Assembly (NCBI RefSeq): GCF_000006765.1 | Contig: NC_002516.2 | DNA from: Pseudomonas aeruginosa PAO1 | Lineage (GTDB): Bacteria > Pseudomonadota > Gammaproteobacteria > Pseudomonadales > Pseudomonadaceae | Strand: one strand, 5' to 3' | DNA length: 64,000 bases | Shown here: one piece after another, positions 52,646 to 58,071 of the stretch | Position numbering within the stretch: position 1 is the stretch's first letter | Layout of the letters: every line of letters begins with the position of its first letter | The notes under the pieces: generated by a model | Seen by the model: only the letters and a program-made list of their open reading frames with translations | Told to the model about the DNA's origin: nothing | Databases searched by the model: none | Program-made: the position numbers and the translations under genes

Positions 52646-52951
52646 ATGGCCTGGTTCCATCTGCTGGTGGCGGCGGCCTTCGAGGTCGCCTTCGCCATGG
52701 GCATGAAGTTCTCCAACGGCTTCGGCAGACTCTGGCCGTCGTTGCTGACGGTGGTCGCGGCGATCGGCGGGATCTATTTCCTGACCCTGGCGCTGCGCGA
52801 GTTGCCGGTCAGCGTCGCCTATCCGATCTGGACCGCGATCGGCTCGCTGGGCACGGTGTTCCTCGGCGTCCTGCTGCTTGGCGAGAGCCTGACGGCGGTG
52901 AAGCTGGTTTCTGTCGGGTTGATCGTCGCCGGGGTGGCCGGGCTCAAGTAA
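52646..52951 (+). CDS. SMR-family small multidrug/cation exporter (SugE/Gdx-like), 101 aa
   Basis: Membrane-embedded Glu (AAFEV), LPVSVAYPIWTAIG, and four TMs. Confidence 0.9.
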   Translation: MAWFHLLVAAAFEVAFAMGMKFSNGFGRLWPSLLTVVAAIGGIYFLTLALRELPVSVAYPIWTAIGSLGTVFLGVLLLGESLTAVKLVSVGLIVAGVAGLK

Positions 52952-53006: not shown

Positions 53007-54170
53007 ATGCTGACCACCCTGGCGGTGTCCAACTACCGCACCCTGCGCGACCTGGTGATGCCGCTGCGGCGCCTGAACCTGATCACCGGCGCCAACGGCG
53101 CCGGCAAGTCCAACGTCTACCGGGCCTTGCGCCTGCTGGCGGACAGTGCGCGCGGCGAAGTGATCCCGTCGCTGGCGCGCGAGGGCGGCCTGCCATCGAC
53201 CCTGTGGGCGGGACCGGAGGACATCAGCCGGGCCATGCGCAGTGGCGCCCAGCCGATCGAAGGCAGCGTGCGCCGGCAGTCGGTGAACCTGCGCCTGGGC
53301 TTCGCCGGGGAGGATTTCGGTTATTGCATCGACCTCGGCCTGCCGGAGCCAAGCCAGAGCAAGTTCGGTCTCGACCCGGTGATCAAGCGCGAATGCATCT
53401 GGGCCGGCCCGTTCCTGCGCCCGGCCAATGTCCTCGTCGACCGTCGCGGGCCGTTGTTGCGCGCACGCGGCGGCGGCGGTCGCTGGGAAGTGGCGGCGCA
53501 GCACCTCGCCACCTTCGACAGCATGCTGGGCGCGGCGGTGGACCCGCGACAGGTGCCGGAACTGCTCGGCCTGCGCGAGCGGATCCGCTCCTGGCGCTTC
53601 TACGACCATTTCCGCAGCGACGCCGAGGCACCGGCGCGGCGGCCGCAGATCGGCACCCATACGCCGGTGCTGGGCGCCGACGGCGCCGACCTGGCCGCGG
53701 CCCTGCAGACCATCCGCGAGATCGGTGATGCGGCGGCGCTGGACGAGGCGGTGGACGATGCCTTTCCCGGCAGCCGCCTGCACATCGACAACCCGGGAGG
53801 GCGCTTCGAAGTGCTGATCGAGCAGCCCGGCCTGCTGCGGCCGCTGCGCACCGCGGAGCTGTCGGACGGCACCCTGCGCTACCTGCTGTGGATCGCCGCC
53901 CTGTTGTCGCCGCGGCCGCCGGCGCTGCTGGTGCTCAACGAACCGGAAACCAGCCTGCATCCCGACCTGCTGCCGGCCCTCGGGCGCCTGGTCGGCCAGG
54001 CCGCGCAGCACTCCCAGGTGCTGGTGGTGTCGCACGCCGCGCGGCTTGTCGCGACGCTCGAAGAGCACCCGGAATGCCATTCGCTGGGGCTGGAGAAGGA
54101 CTTCGGCGAGACCCGCATCCAGGGGCTGCGCGAGCTGGACCGACCGGCCTGGTACTGGCCGGTGCGCTGA
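53007..54170 (+). CDS. Stand-alone SMC/ABC-type ATPase (AAA_21-like), 387 aa
   Basis: Walker A GANGAGKS, signature LSDGT, Walker B variant LLVLNEPETSLHP, and H-loop VSH. Confidence 0.85.
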   Translation: MLTTLAVSNYRTLRDLVMPLRRLNLITGANGAGKSNVYRALRLLADSARGEVIPSLAREGGLPSTLWAGPEDISRAMRSGAQPIEGSVRRQSVNLRLGFAGEDFGYCIDLGLPEPSQSKFGLDPVIKRECIWAGPFLRPANVLVDRRGPLLRARGGGGRWEVAAQHLATFDSMLGAAVDPRQVPELLGLRERIRSWRFYDHFRSDAEAPARRPQIGTHTPVLGADGADLAAALQTIREIGDAAALDEAVDDAFPGSRLHIDNPGGRFEVLIEQPGLLRPLRTAELSDGTLRYLLWIAALLSPRPPALLVLNEPETSLHPDLLPALGRLVGQAAQHSQVLVVSHAARLVATLEEHPECHSLGLEKDFGETRIQGLRELDRPAWYWPVR

Positions 54171-54174
54171 ACCG

Positions 54175-57100
54175 CTACAGGCGGCCGATCTGTTGCGGCG
54201 ACAACGGTACCTGGCAGCGGGTGGCGGTGCGTGGGTCGAGGTAGTCCCTGAGGAGCGGTGCCATGCCCTTGAGTACCTGCACTGGCAGGGCCGAGGTGAA
54301 CTTGAACTGGCTCGACTCGCTGCCGTCGACGTAGGCGGTGAGGGTACCGAAGTGCCGCGGGCCGATGTAGAAGACGAAAGTGGCGGTGCGGTTCAGTGCC
54401 TTCGAACTGCGCACGTGGCCGCCGGCGCTGAAGGTCTGCAGGCGGTTGTCGCCGGTGCCGGTCTTGCCGCCCATCACCAGTGGCGCGCCGTCCGGACGGC
54501 TGAAGGTGCCTTGCAGGCGCCGCGCGGTGCCGGCGTCGACCACCTGGGACAGCGCGTTGCGCAGGGTCGTGGCGACCTCCGAGGTCATCACCCGCTGGCC
54601 GAGGGTGGCTTCCGGGGCGAAGCGCGTCTCGTAGGGCGTACCCAGGGCGAAGTCGAGGTGCTCCAGGCGCAGGGTCGGCATGCGCACGCCATCGTTGACG
54701 ATGATCCCCATCAGTTCGGCCAGCGCCGCCGGGCGGTCGCCGGAGCTGCCCAGGGCGGTGGCGTAGGAGGGCACCAGGTGATCGAAGGGATAGCCGAGTT
54801 TCTTCCATTGCTGGTGCAGGTCGAGGAAGGCCTCCACCTCCAGCAGGATGCGGATGCGCTTGTCGCGGGCGTTCTTGTGCCGCGACTTGAACAGCCAGCC
54901 GTAGACCTCCTTGCGCTCGGCGCCGCTGGCCGCCACCGCCTCGCCGAAGGTCGCCTGCGGCTGCTTCTGCAGATAGCCGAGCAGCCATAGCTCCAGCGGG
55001 TGCACGCGGGCGACGTAGCCCTGGTCGTTGAGGTTGAACTTGCCCGGGCCGTAGCGCTCGTACAGCTCGGCGGCGCGCTTGTCGGTCAGGCTGCCGCGGG
55101 GCAGGCGTTCGCGGAGGAAGGCGCTGAAGCTCGCCAGGTCGGCCTGTGGCTGCAGGTAGCGGTGGATCGCGGCCAGCCGCACCGGCCAGGGACGCAGGCC
55201 GTCGAGGAAGGTCTCCAGGCGCTGGTTGGCGTCCTTGTCGCGGTACTTGACCCAGAAGCGGCGCAGGTAGACCTGGCTTTCCTTGTCGACGAAACGGTCG
55301 AGGTAGTCGGCGCGGCGCGGGTCCTTGTCGTCGGCCAGCAACTGCACCTTGCTCCCGGCGTTCTGGTAGATATCGTGGCGGATCAGGTCGCGCAGCAGGC
55401 GCACGAAGGGCAGGTTGATCGATTCGCGCAGGGCTTCCAGCAGCATCGGCCGGCGGCCGTTGTCTTCCTTGCGGAAGTTGTTGAAGGTGTGCAGCCCGCC
55501 GCCGGTGAAGAAGCTCTCGTAGGGGCTGGCCGAATAGCGCCGTTCCATGGCCGCCTGGAGCATCGCGGAAAGATCGCGGTCGCGGCTGGCGACCAGGTAG
55601 TCGATGCCCCAGCGGAGGATGAAATCGAGCGGCTCCACTTCCACCTTGCGCAGCTCGGCGACGCTCATGCCGCCATAGTCGCGGTGGATCTGCGCGACGG
55701 TCTCCAGGTAGCTGGCCAGCACCCGTAGCTTGGCGGTGGAGCCCAACTCCAGCTTGCTGCCTTCGTTGATGTCGAAGGGCTGGTCGGTGTTGTCGGTCTG
55801 CACCCGCACCTGGTTGCCGCTCGGCGTACGTTCGAACAGGGTGAAGCTGTAGCGTACCGAGCGGGTCGAGGTCGGGGTCAGCAGGCGTTCGCCGATCAGC
55901 CCGAGCTGGGCGGCGTAGTCCGGGTCGGCGAGTTTCTGCAAGTAGGCGGTGACGCTTTCCTGCAACTCGTGCTGGAGGGTGGTATTGGCCCGCAGGTCGA
56001 GACGGTCGAGGTCGTACAGTGGCACGCCGAGCATCCCGGCCAGGCGGGTGCGAGCCAGGGTCACGCCCTTGTTGGTCGGCAGCGGTTGCACCGTCGGCTG
56101 GCTGCGTGGGTCGCGGAACGCCAGCTTCTGCGCCAGCGCCGCATCGCGTAACGGCGCCTCGATGACGCCGGCCTGGGTCAGGACCCGCAGGTGGCTGTCG
56201 GTCATCCGGTCCAGCTCGTCGCGGCCGCGCGGCGCCAGATAGAAGGAAGGCCGGCGGTGGGCGATCATCAGCGCCAGCACCTGGCGCAGGGCCAGGCCCT
56301 GGGCGGCGAGTCCGGCCTTGCCGTCGAGTGCCTCGCCGACCTGCCGGTAGTCGGCGCCGTACCAGACCCACAGGCCATCGGCCAGGCCGGTGACCTCGCC
56401 GTAGCCCGGCGCCGCCGACAGCGGCACCGAGTTGAGGTAGGTGAGCACGATGTCCTGGCGCGCGGCGAAGTTGGCCGGGCCTTCGCGATAGCTGCGTACG
56501 CTGGCCGAGAGCATCTGCCGCAGCTTGTCGCCGATGCTGCCGGTGCGCCCTTCGGCAGAGTGGCGGTATTTCTCGATCTGGGTCGCCAGGGTGCTGCCGC
56601 CGGAGGAGTGCGCGCTGAAGCCGAGCATCTTGCCGACCTGCGACAGCGCCGCCTGGGTGAAGCGACCCCAGTCCACTGCCGGGTTGAGGTAGGGGCGTTC
56701 GTGATCGAGCAGGTCGCGGTTCTCGATGAACAGCAGGCTCTGCACCACCAGCGGCGGCAGGCTGGCGAAGTTCGCGTAGCGCCGTTGCGGATAGCGGAAG
56801 TCGTAGATCGGCACGCCGCGGCAATCGGCGATGTCCAGCCCGGCCTGGGCCTTTTCCGCGTAGGGCGGGAACAGCCGGTGTTCGGCGTAGCGCATCAGTG
56901 CCGGGGAGAAGTGCGCCTGGCGGGTGATGGCGTAGTCGCGGTCGTACAGGCGCTGCATGAACGAAGGCAGCAACTGGTAGCCGAGGCGGCGGTCGAAGGG
57001 GCCGTCCGCCGGGAACAGGATGGCCTCGCTGGGACCCTGGCGCACCTCGTAGTCCAGGGTCGCGGCATAGCGTGCCAGCTCGCGTGCCTGCAGCCGCGAG

Positions 57101-57270
57101 GTGTGCGCTTCGTGAAGTACCACGATGCCCACCGCGGCGAGGATCGGCAAGGCGAAGCCGATCAGCATCAGGCGTTGGCGGAGACGGCTTTTTCGAGGAG
57201 AAGCGGAGGCAGGGAGACTGCAGGGTTGCAGCTCGGAAGGGTCGTTCGTGGATCGTTCTGATGCACCCAT
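54175..57270 (-). CDS. Atypical class A PBP-like protein (GT51 transglycosylase plus transpeptidase-like domain with large insertions), 1031 aa
   Basis: N-terminal TM; GT motifs IENRDLLDH, GGSTLATQIEK and RQDIVLTYLN; TP motifs STAK, SIN and KTG. Confidence 0.8.
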   Translation of the reverse strand: MGASERSTNDPSELQPCSLPASASPRKSRLRQRLMLIGFALPILAAVGIVVLHEAHTSRLQARELARYAATLDYEVRQGPSEAILFPADGPFDRRLGYQLLPSFMQRLYDRDYAITRQAHFSPALMRYAEHRLFPPYAEKAQAGLDIADCRGVPIYDFRYPQRRYANFASLPPLVVQSLLFIENRDLLDHERPYLNPAVDWGRFTQAALSQVGKMLGFSAHSSGGSTLATQIEKYRHSAEGRTGSIGDKLRQMLSASVRSYREGPANFAARQDIVLTYLNSVPLSAAPGYGEVTGLADGLWVWYGADYRQVGEALDGKAGLAAQGLALRQVLALMIAHRRPSFYLAPRGRDELDRMTDSHLRVLTQAGVIEAPLRDAALAQKLAFRDPRSQPTVQPLPTNKGVTLARTRLAGMLGVPLYDLDRLDLRANTTLQHELQESVTAYLQKLADPDYAAQLGLIGERLLTPTSTRSVRYSFTLFERTPSGNQVRVQTDNTDQPFDINEGSKLELGSTAKLRVLASYLETVAQIHRDYGGMSVAELRKVEVEPLDFILRWGIDYLVASRDRDLSAMLQAAMERRYSASPYESFFTGGGLHTFNNFRKEDNGRRPMLLEALRESINLPFVRLLRDLIRHDIYQNAGSKVQLLADDKDPRRADYLDRFVDKESQVYLRRFWVKYRDKDANQRLETFLDGLRPWPVRLAAIHRYLQPQADLASFSAFLRERLPRGSLTDKRAAELYERYGPGKFNLNDQGYVARVHPLELWLLGYLQKQPQATFGEAVAASGAERKEVYGWLFKSRHKNARDKRIRILLEVEAFLDLHQQWKKLGYPFDHLVPSYATALGSSGDRPAALAELMGIIVNDGVRMPTLRLEHLDFALGTPYETRFAPEATLGQRVMTSEVATTLRNALSQVVDAGTARRLQGTFSRPDGAPLVMGGKTGTGDNRLQTFSAGGHVRSSKALNRTATFVFYIGPRHFGTLTAYVDGSESSQFKFTSALPVQVLKGMAPLLRDYLDPRTATRCQVPLSPQQIGRL

Positions 57271-57460
57271 GCTCGCACCGCCTGTAGCTGCGCAATTCAT
57301 CCGCACCTGGGGGGAAGTCTAGTTGTCCCGCTGCAACCCTGCTGTCATTCGTGCAAGGAAAATCTCCCCGGCGGCAATCGGACGACCGAGGATTGGAGCG
57401 GCGTGGCGCAGGGGTTAGAGTGTCTGTCTGAGTTCCTTGTGTTTCGGGTCCGGAATGTCG

Positions 57461-57664
57461 ATGCGCACACTTTTCTCCCTTCTCGTCGGTGTCGTCCTGG
57501 CGGGTTTCTCCGGCCTCGCGGCGCAGGCCGCGCCGGCGCCCTTCTACAAATGGCAGAGCAAGCTCGACGGTCAGGTCGCCTGCATGCAGACCTCGCCGGG
57601 AGACGGCTGGGTCAGGCTCGACGGCCCCTACCGCGATCTCCGCTGCCGCGAACCCCTGCGCTGA
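57461..57664 (+). CDS. Small secreted protein, 67 aa, with two cysteines
   Basis: Signal peptide ending AAQA|A; mature APAPFYKWQSKLDGQVAC...RCREPLR; host-like codons. An alternative start is 57455. Confidence 0.72.
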   Translation: MRTLFSLLVGVVLAGFSGLAAQAAPAPFYKWQSKLDGQVACMQTSPGDGWVRLDGPYRDLRCREPLR

Positions 57665-57668
57665 CCCC

Positions 57669-57785
57669 ATGCAGCGCAGCCGGCTGCTCGAGCGCAGCTG
57701 GCGCCTGCAAGGCCAGCGCGAAACCGTCCACTCCCGGCTCGGCCGGCCGCTGTCCCTGCTGCTGCGCGCGCGGCCCAGGGAGTGA
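57669..57785 (+). CDS. Possible 38-aa small ORF or gene remnant
   Basis: ATG 4 nt after the upstream stop; G/C at the third position in 36 of 38 codons; no clear RBS. Confidence 0.3.
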   Translation: MQRSRLLERSWRLQGQRETVHSRLGRPLSLLLRARPRE

Positions 57786-58071
57786 ATCCATTCAGCGTTG
57801 GCGGTCCTTACGCCTTTGGTCCAGTTGCCCCATCGCGGGGCATGACGGCCTTGAAATCTTGTGTAAAACTCCGGCCCGACCTCAGTTGTAGTCGACTCCC
57901 GCAATGCCCACGTTCGCTCCACGAGAGCGGACAGCCTCTTCCGGTGTGCAGTCCTGGAACCTATGACGCCCCGTCGTCGCCTGCTGTGCGGTATCGCGCA
58001 GGGGCCGCGCCGTTGGCGAAATCCGCTTCCCTACCCCGACCGCACGAGCGAGTCCGCAACTGATCTATCTC

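Follow-up and report, generated by a model that had tools for sequence, protein, structure and literature searches.

PA0788 of Pseudomonas aeruginosa represents a widespread fourth clade of class A penicillin-binding proteins with a PBP1c-type glycosyltransferase motif

PA0788, a gene on the minus strand of a 64,000 nucleotide stretch of the Pseudomonas aeruginosa PAO1 chromosome (NCBI RefSeq assembly GCF_000006765.1, contig NC_002516.2; this whole stretch is called the window below), encodes a true but very divergent homologue of the penicillin-binding proteins of class A (aPBPs). It is related to the bifunctional aPBPs over both the glycosyltransferase (GT) and the transpeptidase (TP) domain, and its family is a distinct, widespread fourth aPBP clade beside PBP1a, PBP1b, and PBP1c. 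The protein is made in cells and has already been annotated and noticed. With moderate confidence we regard PA0788 as an accessory, condition-specific enzyme of peptidoglycan synthesis or repair, in which both catalytic sites would be active and a family-specific insert would serve regulation or docking.

Identity of the gene and its product

The minus strand of the window holds an uninterrupted open reading frame (ORF) of 1031 aa at 54175..57270, which a first-pass annotation, made from the sequence alone, had described as an "unrecognised bifunctional synthase" or else a repurposed beta-lactam-binding scaffold. In the public annotation PA0788 starts at ATG 57300, 10 codons upstream of ATG 57270 and in the same frame; the stretch that differs between the two starts lies within the disordered cytoplasmic tail of the protein. 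Residue numbers in this work count from ATG 57270, and 10 has to be added to obtain the published PA0788 numbering. The published cloning primer for PA0788(64-1041) matches the window exactly at 57095-57111, which corresponds to residue 64 of 1041.

The protein is 100% identical to a 1041 aa NCBI protein (P0001), "transglycosylase domain-containing protein", which belongs to a cluster of 2544 sequences. The flanking genes place the locus at PA0781-PA0793 of P. aeruginosa: they encode a TonB-dependent receptor, a LysR regulator, a flavodoxin-like FMN reductase, a small SMR-type membrane protein, an AAA_21 ATPase, and an amino-acid permease, and include prpD and prpF. NCBI PGAP already names PA0788 a PBP/transglycosylase, and the protein figures in proteomics and pulldown papers, so that it cannot be called unrecognised. 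What holds of the earlier description is that PA0788 is a genuine protein of the class A PBP type which the classical list of P. aeruginosa PBPs does not contain; it is no redundant synthase, and its GT site is of the PBP1c type. A motif search of the ORF translation found the listed motifs exactly where the first-pass annotation had placed them. The gene and the domains of its product are as follows.

54175..57300, minus strand: PA0788 coding sequence of the public annotation; 1041 aa, ATG at 57300, stop codon at 54175-54177
57112..57174, minus strand: single N-terminal transmembrane (TM) helix, residues 33-53; hydrophobic sequence, helix 29-57 in the AlphaFold2 model
56821..57099, minus strand: extra alpha/beta domain, residues ~58-150; from AlphaFold2 secondary structure, predicted local distance difference test (pLDDT) score >90
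56116..56811, minus strand: GT51 domain, residues ~154-385; PF00912 with 59 bits, hhalign probability 96.4% for PBP1b and 96.2% for PbpC
54226..55755, minus strand: penicillin-binding (acyl-serine transferase) domain including two insertions, residues ~506-1015; from PF00905, PBP1b matches, and Foldseek

PA0788 is a divergent class A PBP anchored in the membrane

Both Pfam profiles that had been proposed as a check scored above their cut-offs: PF00912 (Transgly) matched residues 154-349 with 59 bits (cut-off 27, E=5e-16), and PF00905 (Transpeptidase) matched residues 847-940 with 23.8 bits (cut-off 22.1). The protein is far below the NCBIfam cut-offs for PBP1a (TIGR02074, 42.9 versus 508.75 bits), for the PBP1b equivalog (TIGR02071, 40.7 versus 717.75 bits), and for PBP1c (TIGR02073, 20.2 versus 494.2; NF051885, 17.7 versus 900). 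The best NCBIfam match across the GT region was PBP_1c.

When the single PA0788 sequence was searched against the PDB, only E. coli PBP1b was matched, at residues 820-950 (E=7e-5). With the family profile this match rose to E=4e-11, and weak matches across GT51 motifs 1 and 2 appeared; a phmmer search of the PDB with the GT domain alone (residues 154-385, single sequence) returned no GT51 chain and only noise. An AlphaFold2 model calculated from an alignment of 63 family members reached a pLDDT of 91.6 and a predicted template modelling score of 0.86. As seen in a Foldseek search of this model against the PDB, the top matches were full-length bifunctional aPBPs, namely S. aureus PBP2 (E=2e-15), E. 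coli PBP1b (E=5e-15), and A. baumannii PBP1a, with E-values ranging from 2e-15 to 1e-10. A PADLOC scan of the protein found nothing.

The TM helix is preceded by a basic, poorly conserved cytoplasmic tail of ~30 residues, which includes the sequence RKSRLRQR before the helix. PA0788 is thus predicted from its sequence to be a bitopic inner-membrane protein with the N-terminus inside and the catalytic domains facing the periplasm. The single N-terminal TM segment had been noticed before, and it is borne out by both the hydrophobic sequence and helix 29-57 of the model.

The transpeptidase domain has invariant motifs and two insertions

The following motifs and insertions were located within the TP domain.

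55729..55740, minus strand: SxxK motif, S511-T-A-K514; S and K invariant, at the N-terminus of the long helix 510-532
55516..55674, minus strand: insertion 1, residues ~533-585; ~45 aa beyond PBP1b, short helices, from helix alpha-2 to the SxN loop
55414..55422, minus strand: SxN motif, S617-I-N619; S and N invariant, in the loop between helices 610-615 and 620-636
54826..55365, minus strand: insertion 2, residues ~636-815; ~180 aa, all-helical, from the SxN helix to the conserved W-x-x-L-G-Y-P helix
54457..54465, minus strand: K936-T-G938; invariant and followed by T-G-D, on beta-strand 933-947, with two more strands after it

The three motifs follow each other in the right order, as had been read from the sequence before. 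S511/K514, S617/N619, and K936/T937/G938 do not vary among the 63 family members (35-51% identity), and the motif residues are also invariant in 81 Pseudomonas/Aeromonas orthologues. Conservation in homologues, on which the earlier proposal had been made to depend, is therefore given for the TP motifs. The KTG at 54457-54465 is the sole K[ST]G in PA0788, and the aPBP-like segment ALGSSGDRPAALAELMG..NDG is also found in the protein. In the AlphaFold2 model each TP motif is predicted to lie on the secondary-structure element that is usual for the penicillin-binding fold.

KTG and SxN could be aligned to PBP1b, and the C-terminal half of the TP domain (820-950) aligned well. A greedy hhalign alignment of the whole TP region with PBP1b was meaningless N-terminal of residue 820. 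Upstream of this residue only short local TP matches were obtained, around SxN (GRRPMLLEALRESINLPFVRL in PA0788 versus GRVMLVDALTRSMNVPTVNL in PBP1b, E=1.4e-3) and around SxxK (E=0.21).

SxxK and SxN are separated by 106 aa in PA0788 versus 62 aa in E. coli PBP1b (S510-S572), and SxN and KTG by 319 aa versus 126 aa (S572-K698). The first-pass annotation had judged these spacings to be far larger than in PBP1b and had deduced two inserts within the TP fold. Both statements are correct, and relative to PBP1b the inserts amount to ~45 aa and ~180 aa. Insertion 2 comprises ~12 helices in the AlphaFold2 model and directly follows the SxN helix. Its conservation equals that of the catalytic parts, with W792, F815, and W822 invariant and the blocks HPLELW and RIRxxLE conserved. 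Folded alone it gave a pLDDT of 84.7, and a structure search with this model against the PDB revealed no match (best E=1.3, TM-score 0.17).

The TM helix and the GT51 domain are separated by a further predicted alpha/beta domain of ~90 aa, in the sequence position that UB2H has in PBP1b. The hhalign alignments to PBP1a/1b/1c start only at PA0788 residue ~142-162.

The GT51 domain carries a variant motif 3 that is also present in E. coli PBP1c

Four GT51 motifs were assigned.

56701..56727, minus strand: motif 1, IENRDLLDH; E183 corresponds to PBP1b E233, EN replaces the canonical ED
56569..56601, minus strand: motif 2, GGSTLATQIEK; G224, S226, T227, Q231, and K234 invariant
56515..56529, minus strand: variant motif 3, D248-K-L-R-Q252, in place of R-K-x-x-E; K249 and Q252 invariant
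56431..56460, minus strand: motif 4, RQDIVLTYLN; Y278 and N280 nearly invariant

Alignment of the PA0788 family to PBP1b by hhalign (probability 96.4%) paired E183 with E233, D248-K249 with R286-K287, and Q252 with E290, and placed GGSTLATQIEK opposite GASTLTQQLVK of PBP1b. E183, which is the general-base Glu of GT51, as well as G224/S226/T227/Q231/K234, K249, and Q252 are unvarying in the 63 family members at 35-51% identity and also in the 81 orthologues. Motifs 1, 2, and 4 had been located correctly before, and E183 and the motif 2 set among their residues are invariant. The first-pass annotation had also concluded that all catalytic motifs are kept; this passed over motif 3 (RKxxE), the Glu of which is the invariant Gln252 in PA0788. 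Its equation of motif 1 with EDxxFxxH holds for E183 and not for the rest of the motif: the Asp is replaced by Asn (EN instead of ED) in 47 of the 63 family members, and His190 of IENRDLLDH is variable and mostly Pro.

Position 252 is never Glu in the family, and 59 of the 63 members have Asp or Glu at position 248, which results in a [D/E]-K-x-R-Q consensus. Since residues 248 and 252 are only one turn apart on helix 246-260 of the AlphaFold2 model, the carboxylate of the missing motif-3 Glu may be provided instead by the conserved acidic residue at 248. Work by Terrak et al. is said to support a catalytic role of E290, the PBP1b counterpart of Q252. This residue has also been described as catalytic elsewhere (PMC7400108).

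The same variant is present in PBP1c (PbpC) of E. coli. In an alignment of four E. coli GT51 proteins, motif 3 reads GGKIRQ in PbpC of strain K-12 (L083:5014-7326) versus WRKANE in PBP1b, and the spacing from the Lys to motif 4 is 16 residues in both proteins. All 120 PbpC sequences that were retrieved have K[IF]RQ; this homologue search, with E. coli PbpC as query, returned Escherichia and Citrobacter sequences only. A moenomycin-sensitive activity of PbpC was reportedly described by Schiffer and Holtje (1999). RefSeq names PbpC a peptidoglycan glycosyltransferase, and it is counted among the glycosyltransferases (PMC10455606). Because a protein that is named and cited as a glycosyltransferase has this motif, K-x-R-Q is a natural GT51 variant of E. 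coli/Citrobacter PbpC and of the PA0788 family, and it is no proof of inactivity. As PbpC is an accepted class A member, a Glu in motif 3 is no universal feature of this class. We had also considered the exchange of Glu for Gln as a sign of a dead GT domain, and dropped this view since E. coli PbpC carries the same change.

The PA0788 family is found in several phyla

The family is large and extends over several Gram-negative phyla. With clustering at the 50% identity level, an exhaustive homologue search yielded 804 clusters with E<=1e-30. Members of the best 150 clusters are mostly ~1000 aa long and align end-to-end at 37-51% identity, and some are shorter or partial (600-860 aa). At least 574 loci in species-representative genomes encode a relative of PA0788. 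The best 80 of these at least 574 loci, on which all neighbourhood and upstream-motif counts given below are based, belong to Pseudomonas, related genera, and Aeromonas (62% identity). More distant family members were found in Micavibrio, Burkholderiales, Rhodocyclaceae, Bryobacterales (Acidobacteriota), Poribacteria, and Oligoflexia. SPOR and SH3 domains are known peptidoglycan-binding modules, and a few of the distant members carry a SPOR domain or tandem SH3 domains at the C-terminus (P0334, 1086-1159; P0375, 1101-1168; P0137, 1087-1225).

Published data on PA0788

A proteomics study detected PA0788 as a "possible PBP" of 116.4 kDa with 16-18 peptides, and its abundance was 2.5- to 3.6-fold lower at the highest meropenem concentration below the minimal inhibitory concentration (sub-MIC) (PMC9948630). 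In pulldowns with RlpA and SltB1, both lytic transglycosylases, PA0788 was enriched more than 50-fold (PMC9712689). Sub-lineages of a hypermutable cystic fibrosis (CF) strain had acquired five non-synonymous and zero synonymous mutations in the gene, and this evolution study also refers to PA0788 as a PBP (PMC4199492). Furthermore, PA0788 is among the genes that are negatively regulated by the LysR regulator PA2206 (PMC3557286). None of these papers tests its function.

Losing both PBP1a and PBP1b is synthetically lethal in P. aeruginosa (PMC8536351). PA0788 is therefore unable to substitute for these two enzymes and is not a redundant synthase. E. coli PBP1c is likewise unable to compensate for PBP1a/PBP1b (PMC7554673).

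Proposed function and alternative explanations

We propose that the GT51 domain of PA0788 would bind lipid II or nascent glycan and polymerise it by PBP1c-type chemistry, with Gln252, Lys249, and the acidic residue at position 248 standing in for the usual motif-3 Glu. Ser511 would attack D-Ala-D-Ala stem peptides and thereby cross-link, and possibly also trim, the new strand, while the helical insert beside the SxN loop could gate substrate access or dock partners. In the cell PA0788 would be an analogue of PBP1c, a synthase or repair enzyme that is non-essential and condition-specific, and not a back-up for PBP1a/PBP1b.

Several points weigh against a protein with two active sites and PBP1c-type chemistry. 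The motif-3 Glu is absent from the family, and F237, H240, T269, and Q270 of PBP1b, which belong to motifs 1 and 2, are changed; because of these alterations in motifs 1-3 the polymerase activity of PA0788 could be weak or absent. The GT domain of the family is no closer to PbpC (hhalign score 72.8) than to PBP1b (73.4), and since the score for PbpC is not higher, the K-x-R-Q that PbpC and the PA0788 family have in common could be convergent. To our knowledge, no band of ~116 kDa is among the PBPs that Bocillin or penicillin labelling of P. aeruginosa normally shows, which could be due to low abundance or poor acylation. The literature holds no enzymatic data for any member of the family, and recombinant PA0788(64-1041) was insoluble (PMC9712689).

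Some of these observations would suit a PA0788 that is effectively monofunctional, an explanation that is the main rival and that we regard as rather unlikely. The GT51-like domain would then be a glycan-binding (possibly lysozyme-like cleaving) module that does not polymerise lipid II, and the active TP domain would work alongside lytic transglycosylases on existing peptidoglycan, as a DD-transpeptidase, DD-carboxypeptidase, or endopeptidase. The Gln at the position of the motif-3 Glu, the partial degeneration of motifs 1 and 2, the single-sequence GT-domain search without any match to a GT51 structure, the perfect conservation of the TP motifs, the pulldown with RlpA and SltB1, and the inability to replace PBP1a/1b all agree with this. 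Transpeptidation by canonical aPBPs requires that glycan synthesis is under way (PMC4632607); in a family whose GT site is altered, the two reactions may have become uncoupled. However, E183, the motif 2 residues, K249, and Q252 show no variation from phylum to phylum, which is beyond the needs of a binding module, and E. coli PbpC is named and cited as a glycosyltransferase with the same K-x-R-Q. The term "carboxypeptidase" in JGI names is a generic COG label and provides no evidence for the proposed TP role. It appears very improbable that neither site is active and that PA0788 is a non-catalytic pseudo-enzyme, which would act as a scaffold or regulator in cell-wall complexes or as a sink or sensor for beta-lactams. 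An activity was never shown for PA0788, the large insert could occlude the cleft, the abundance drops at high sub-MIC meropenem, and parallel non-synonymous mutations arose in a CF lineage that was treated with beta-lactams. But pseudo-enzymes normally lose their catalytic residues, whereas every nucleophile or general-base residue is invariant here at 35-51% identity, and the poorly conserved cytoplasmic part of ~30 residues leaves no room for a signalling output domain.

We give practically no weight to the view that the motifs are a chance collection of short matches in a spurious high-GC ORF. Many long ORFs overlap in this region, for example one of 1347 aa on the minus strand at 53879..57922. 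Thousands of full-length homologues, Pfam scores above threshold, a confident fold, and mass spectrometry peptides refute a chance origin of the PA0788 ORF. The 1347 aa ORF (53879-57922) spans the whole gene in another frame; its translation is of low complexity and rich in Arg, Pro, and Ala, and it is a typical high-GC artefact and no gene.

In a more far-reaching reading the family, as a previously undescribed fourth aPBP clade of several phyla, would use its helical insert and its PBP1c-type GT site for a distinct substrate or a distinct regulation; we consider this unlikely as a whole. If it were true, PA0788 could be, for example, a synthase for repair or stationary phase that works directly with RlpA and SltB1 and that standard beta-lactams acylate only poorly. 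It would then be an overlooked contributor to cell-wall maintenance and to the beta-lactam response in Pseudomonas and Aeromonas.

Gene neighbourhood

No neighbour gene is conserved across the 80 orthologous loci. The commonest neighbours are, among others, an amino-acid permease gene (27 loci), a methyltransferase gene, a Glu-synthase-like gene, and OpgC together with a family-2 glycosyltransferase (GT2) gene. Because no neighbour is conserved, the PA0788 gene looks monocistronic, and with no conserved partner in the 80 loci we dropped any inference of function from an operon.

Downstream of PA0788 in the window, an AAA_21 ATPase gene (53007-54170, plus strand), which is probably PA0787, is convergent with PA0788 and leaves 4 bp between the stop codons. 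In PADLOC this ATPase matches the candidate defence protein HEC-01A best (E=2e-43), and AriA, mad3, and AbiLi-like models come next. A partner nuclease gene is not evident next to it, and a gene for a small transporter with four TM segments lies upstream. The latter, an ORF of 101 aa (52646-52951, plus strand), has four hydrophobic segments with a conserved Glu in the first (AAAFEVAF) and looks like an SMR/SugE-type small multidrug transporter. On the other side a 67 aa ORF (57461-57664, plus strand) with a signal peptide and two Cys is divergent from PA0788 and starts ~160 bp upstream of it. It was rejected as a partner of PA0788, since it adjoins the orthologue only in P. paraeruginosa, P. 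citronellolis, and P. panipatensis.

Among the orthologous loci, those of Aeromonas have a complete rRNA operon (16S, tRNA-Glu, 23S, 5S) ~0.9 kb upstream of the orthologue and in the same orientation (L025:1-5082). The position of this operon explains why many draft contigs of Aeromonas (L016, L017, L026, L029, L039, L045, L054, L065) break off 750-1000 bp upstream of the orthologue. In the P. fluorescens group the orthologue lies downstream of genes for OpgC (periplasmic glucan succinylation) and a family-2 glycosyltransferase; OpgC (as L063:2056-3213) is present in ~20 and the glycosyltransferase (as L069:1454-2392) in ~14 loci of this group. This envelope-related neighbourhood is lineage-specific.

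Upstream region

The first-pass annotation had pointed to a CTAGACT as an RpoS-like -10 element. This sequence is present at 57316-57322, 16 nt upstream of the annotated ATG 57300, and a promoter scan detected no sigma-70-like promoter upstream of PA0788. CTAnACT occurs within 180 nt upstream of the gene in 8 of the 80 orthologous loci, in ~3 lineages and at differing distances. The expectation is ~0.35 from the composition of the whole loci, which are mostly coding, and this background underestimates the value for AT-rich intergenic DNA. The recurrence is suggestive at most as a hint to RpoS.

Relevance for beta-lactam targets and GT51 enzymes

P. aeruginosa is treated mainly with beta-lactams, and the PBP targets are usually regarded as a closed list. 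PA0788 is a conserved and expressed protein of ~116 kDa, with 2544 near-identical sequences in one cluster and an intact predicted penicillin-binding site. If active, it would be an extra target or a bypass route to be considered in studies of PBP occupancy, and it would give access to the still unexplained biology of "spare" aPBPs like PBP1c. Its helical insert is a conserved domain without a structural relative that adjoins an active site of a major drug-target type. With regard to the GT51 family, the second "catalytic" Glu is replaced in E. coli/Citrobacter PbpC and throughout the PA0788 family.

Comparison with known class A PBPs

E. coli PBP1b (MrcB; structures 3VMA/5HLB) and PA0788 have the TM helix, an extra domain, the GT51 domain, a linker, and the transpeptidase in the same order. 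PBP1b is the best PDB sequence match of PA0788 (hhalign probability 96.4% for the GT domain, Foldseek E=5e-15), with ~14% identity in the structural alignment. The two proteins differ in motif 3, which is RKxxE in PBP1b and [D/E]KxRQ in the PA0788 family, and in the TP fold, to which PA0788 adds ~45 and ~180 residues. PBP1b is half of an essential pair, whereas PA0788 stands outside this pair.

The full-length proteins S. aureus PBP2 and A. baumannii PBP1a match PA0788 over both domains with TM-scores of ~0.5-0.57 on the target and 10-14% identity. Unlike PA0788, both have a canonical motif 3 and lack an insert at the SxN position.

With E. coli PBP1c (PbpC) PA0788 has the identical K-x-R-Q variant in common, with Gln at the position equivalent to E290 (GKIRQ/GKFRQ in PbpC, DKLRQ in PA0788), and the GT domains align with an hhalign probability of 96.2%. 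Both are "extra" aPBPs, and neither replaces PBP1a plus PBP1b. The C-terminal BiPBP_C domain (PF06832), which all retrieved PbpC relatives carry, is absent from PA0788 according to the Pfam scan. The TP domain of PA0788 is much larger and not specifically PbpC-like (hhalign score 32), and PbpC has no helical insert. PbpC is encoded in an operon with an alpha-2-macroglobulin gene; no such gene adjoins PA0788, the neighbours of which are the genes for the AAA_21 ATPase and the amino-acid permease, and no gene is conserved beside it across the 80 orthologous loci.

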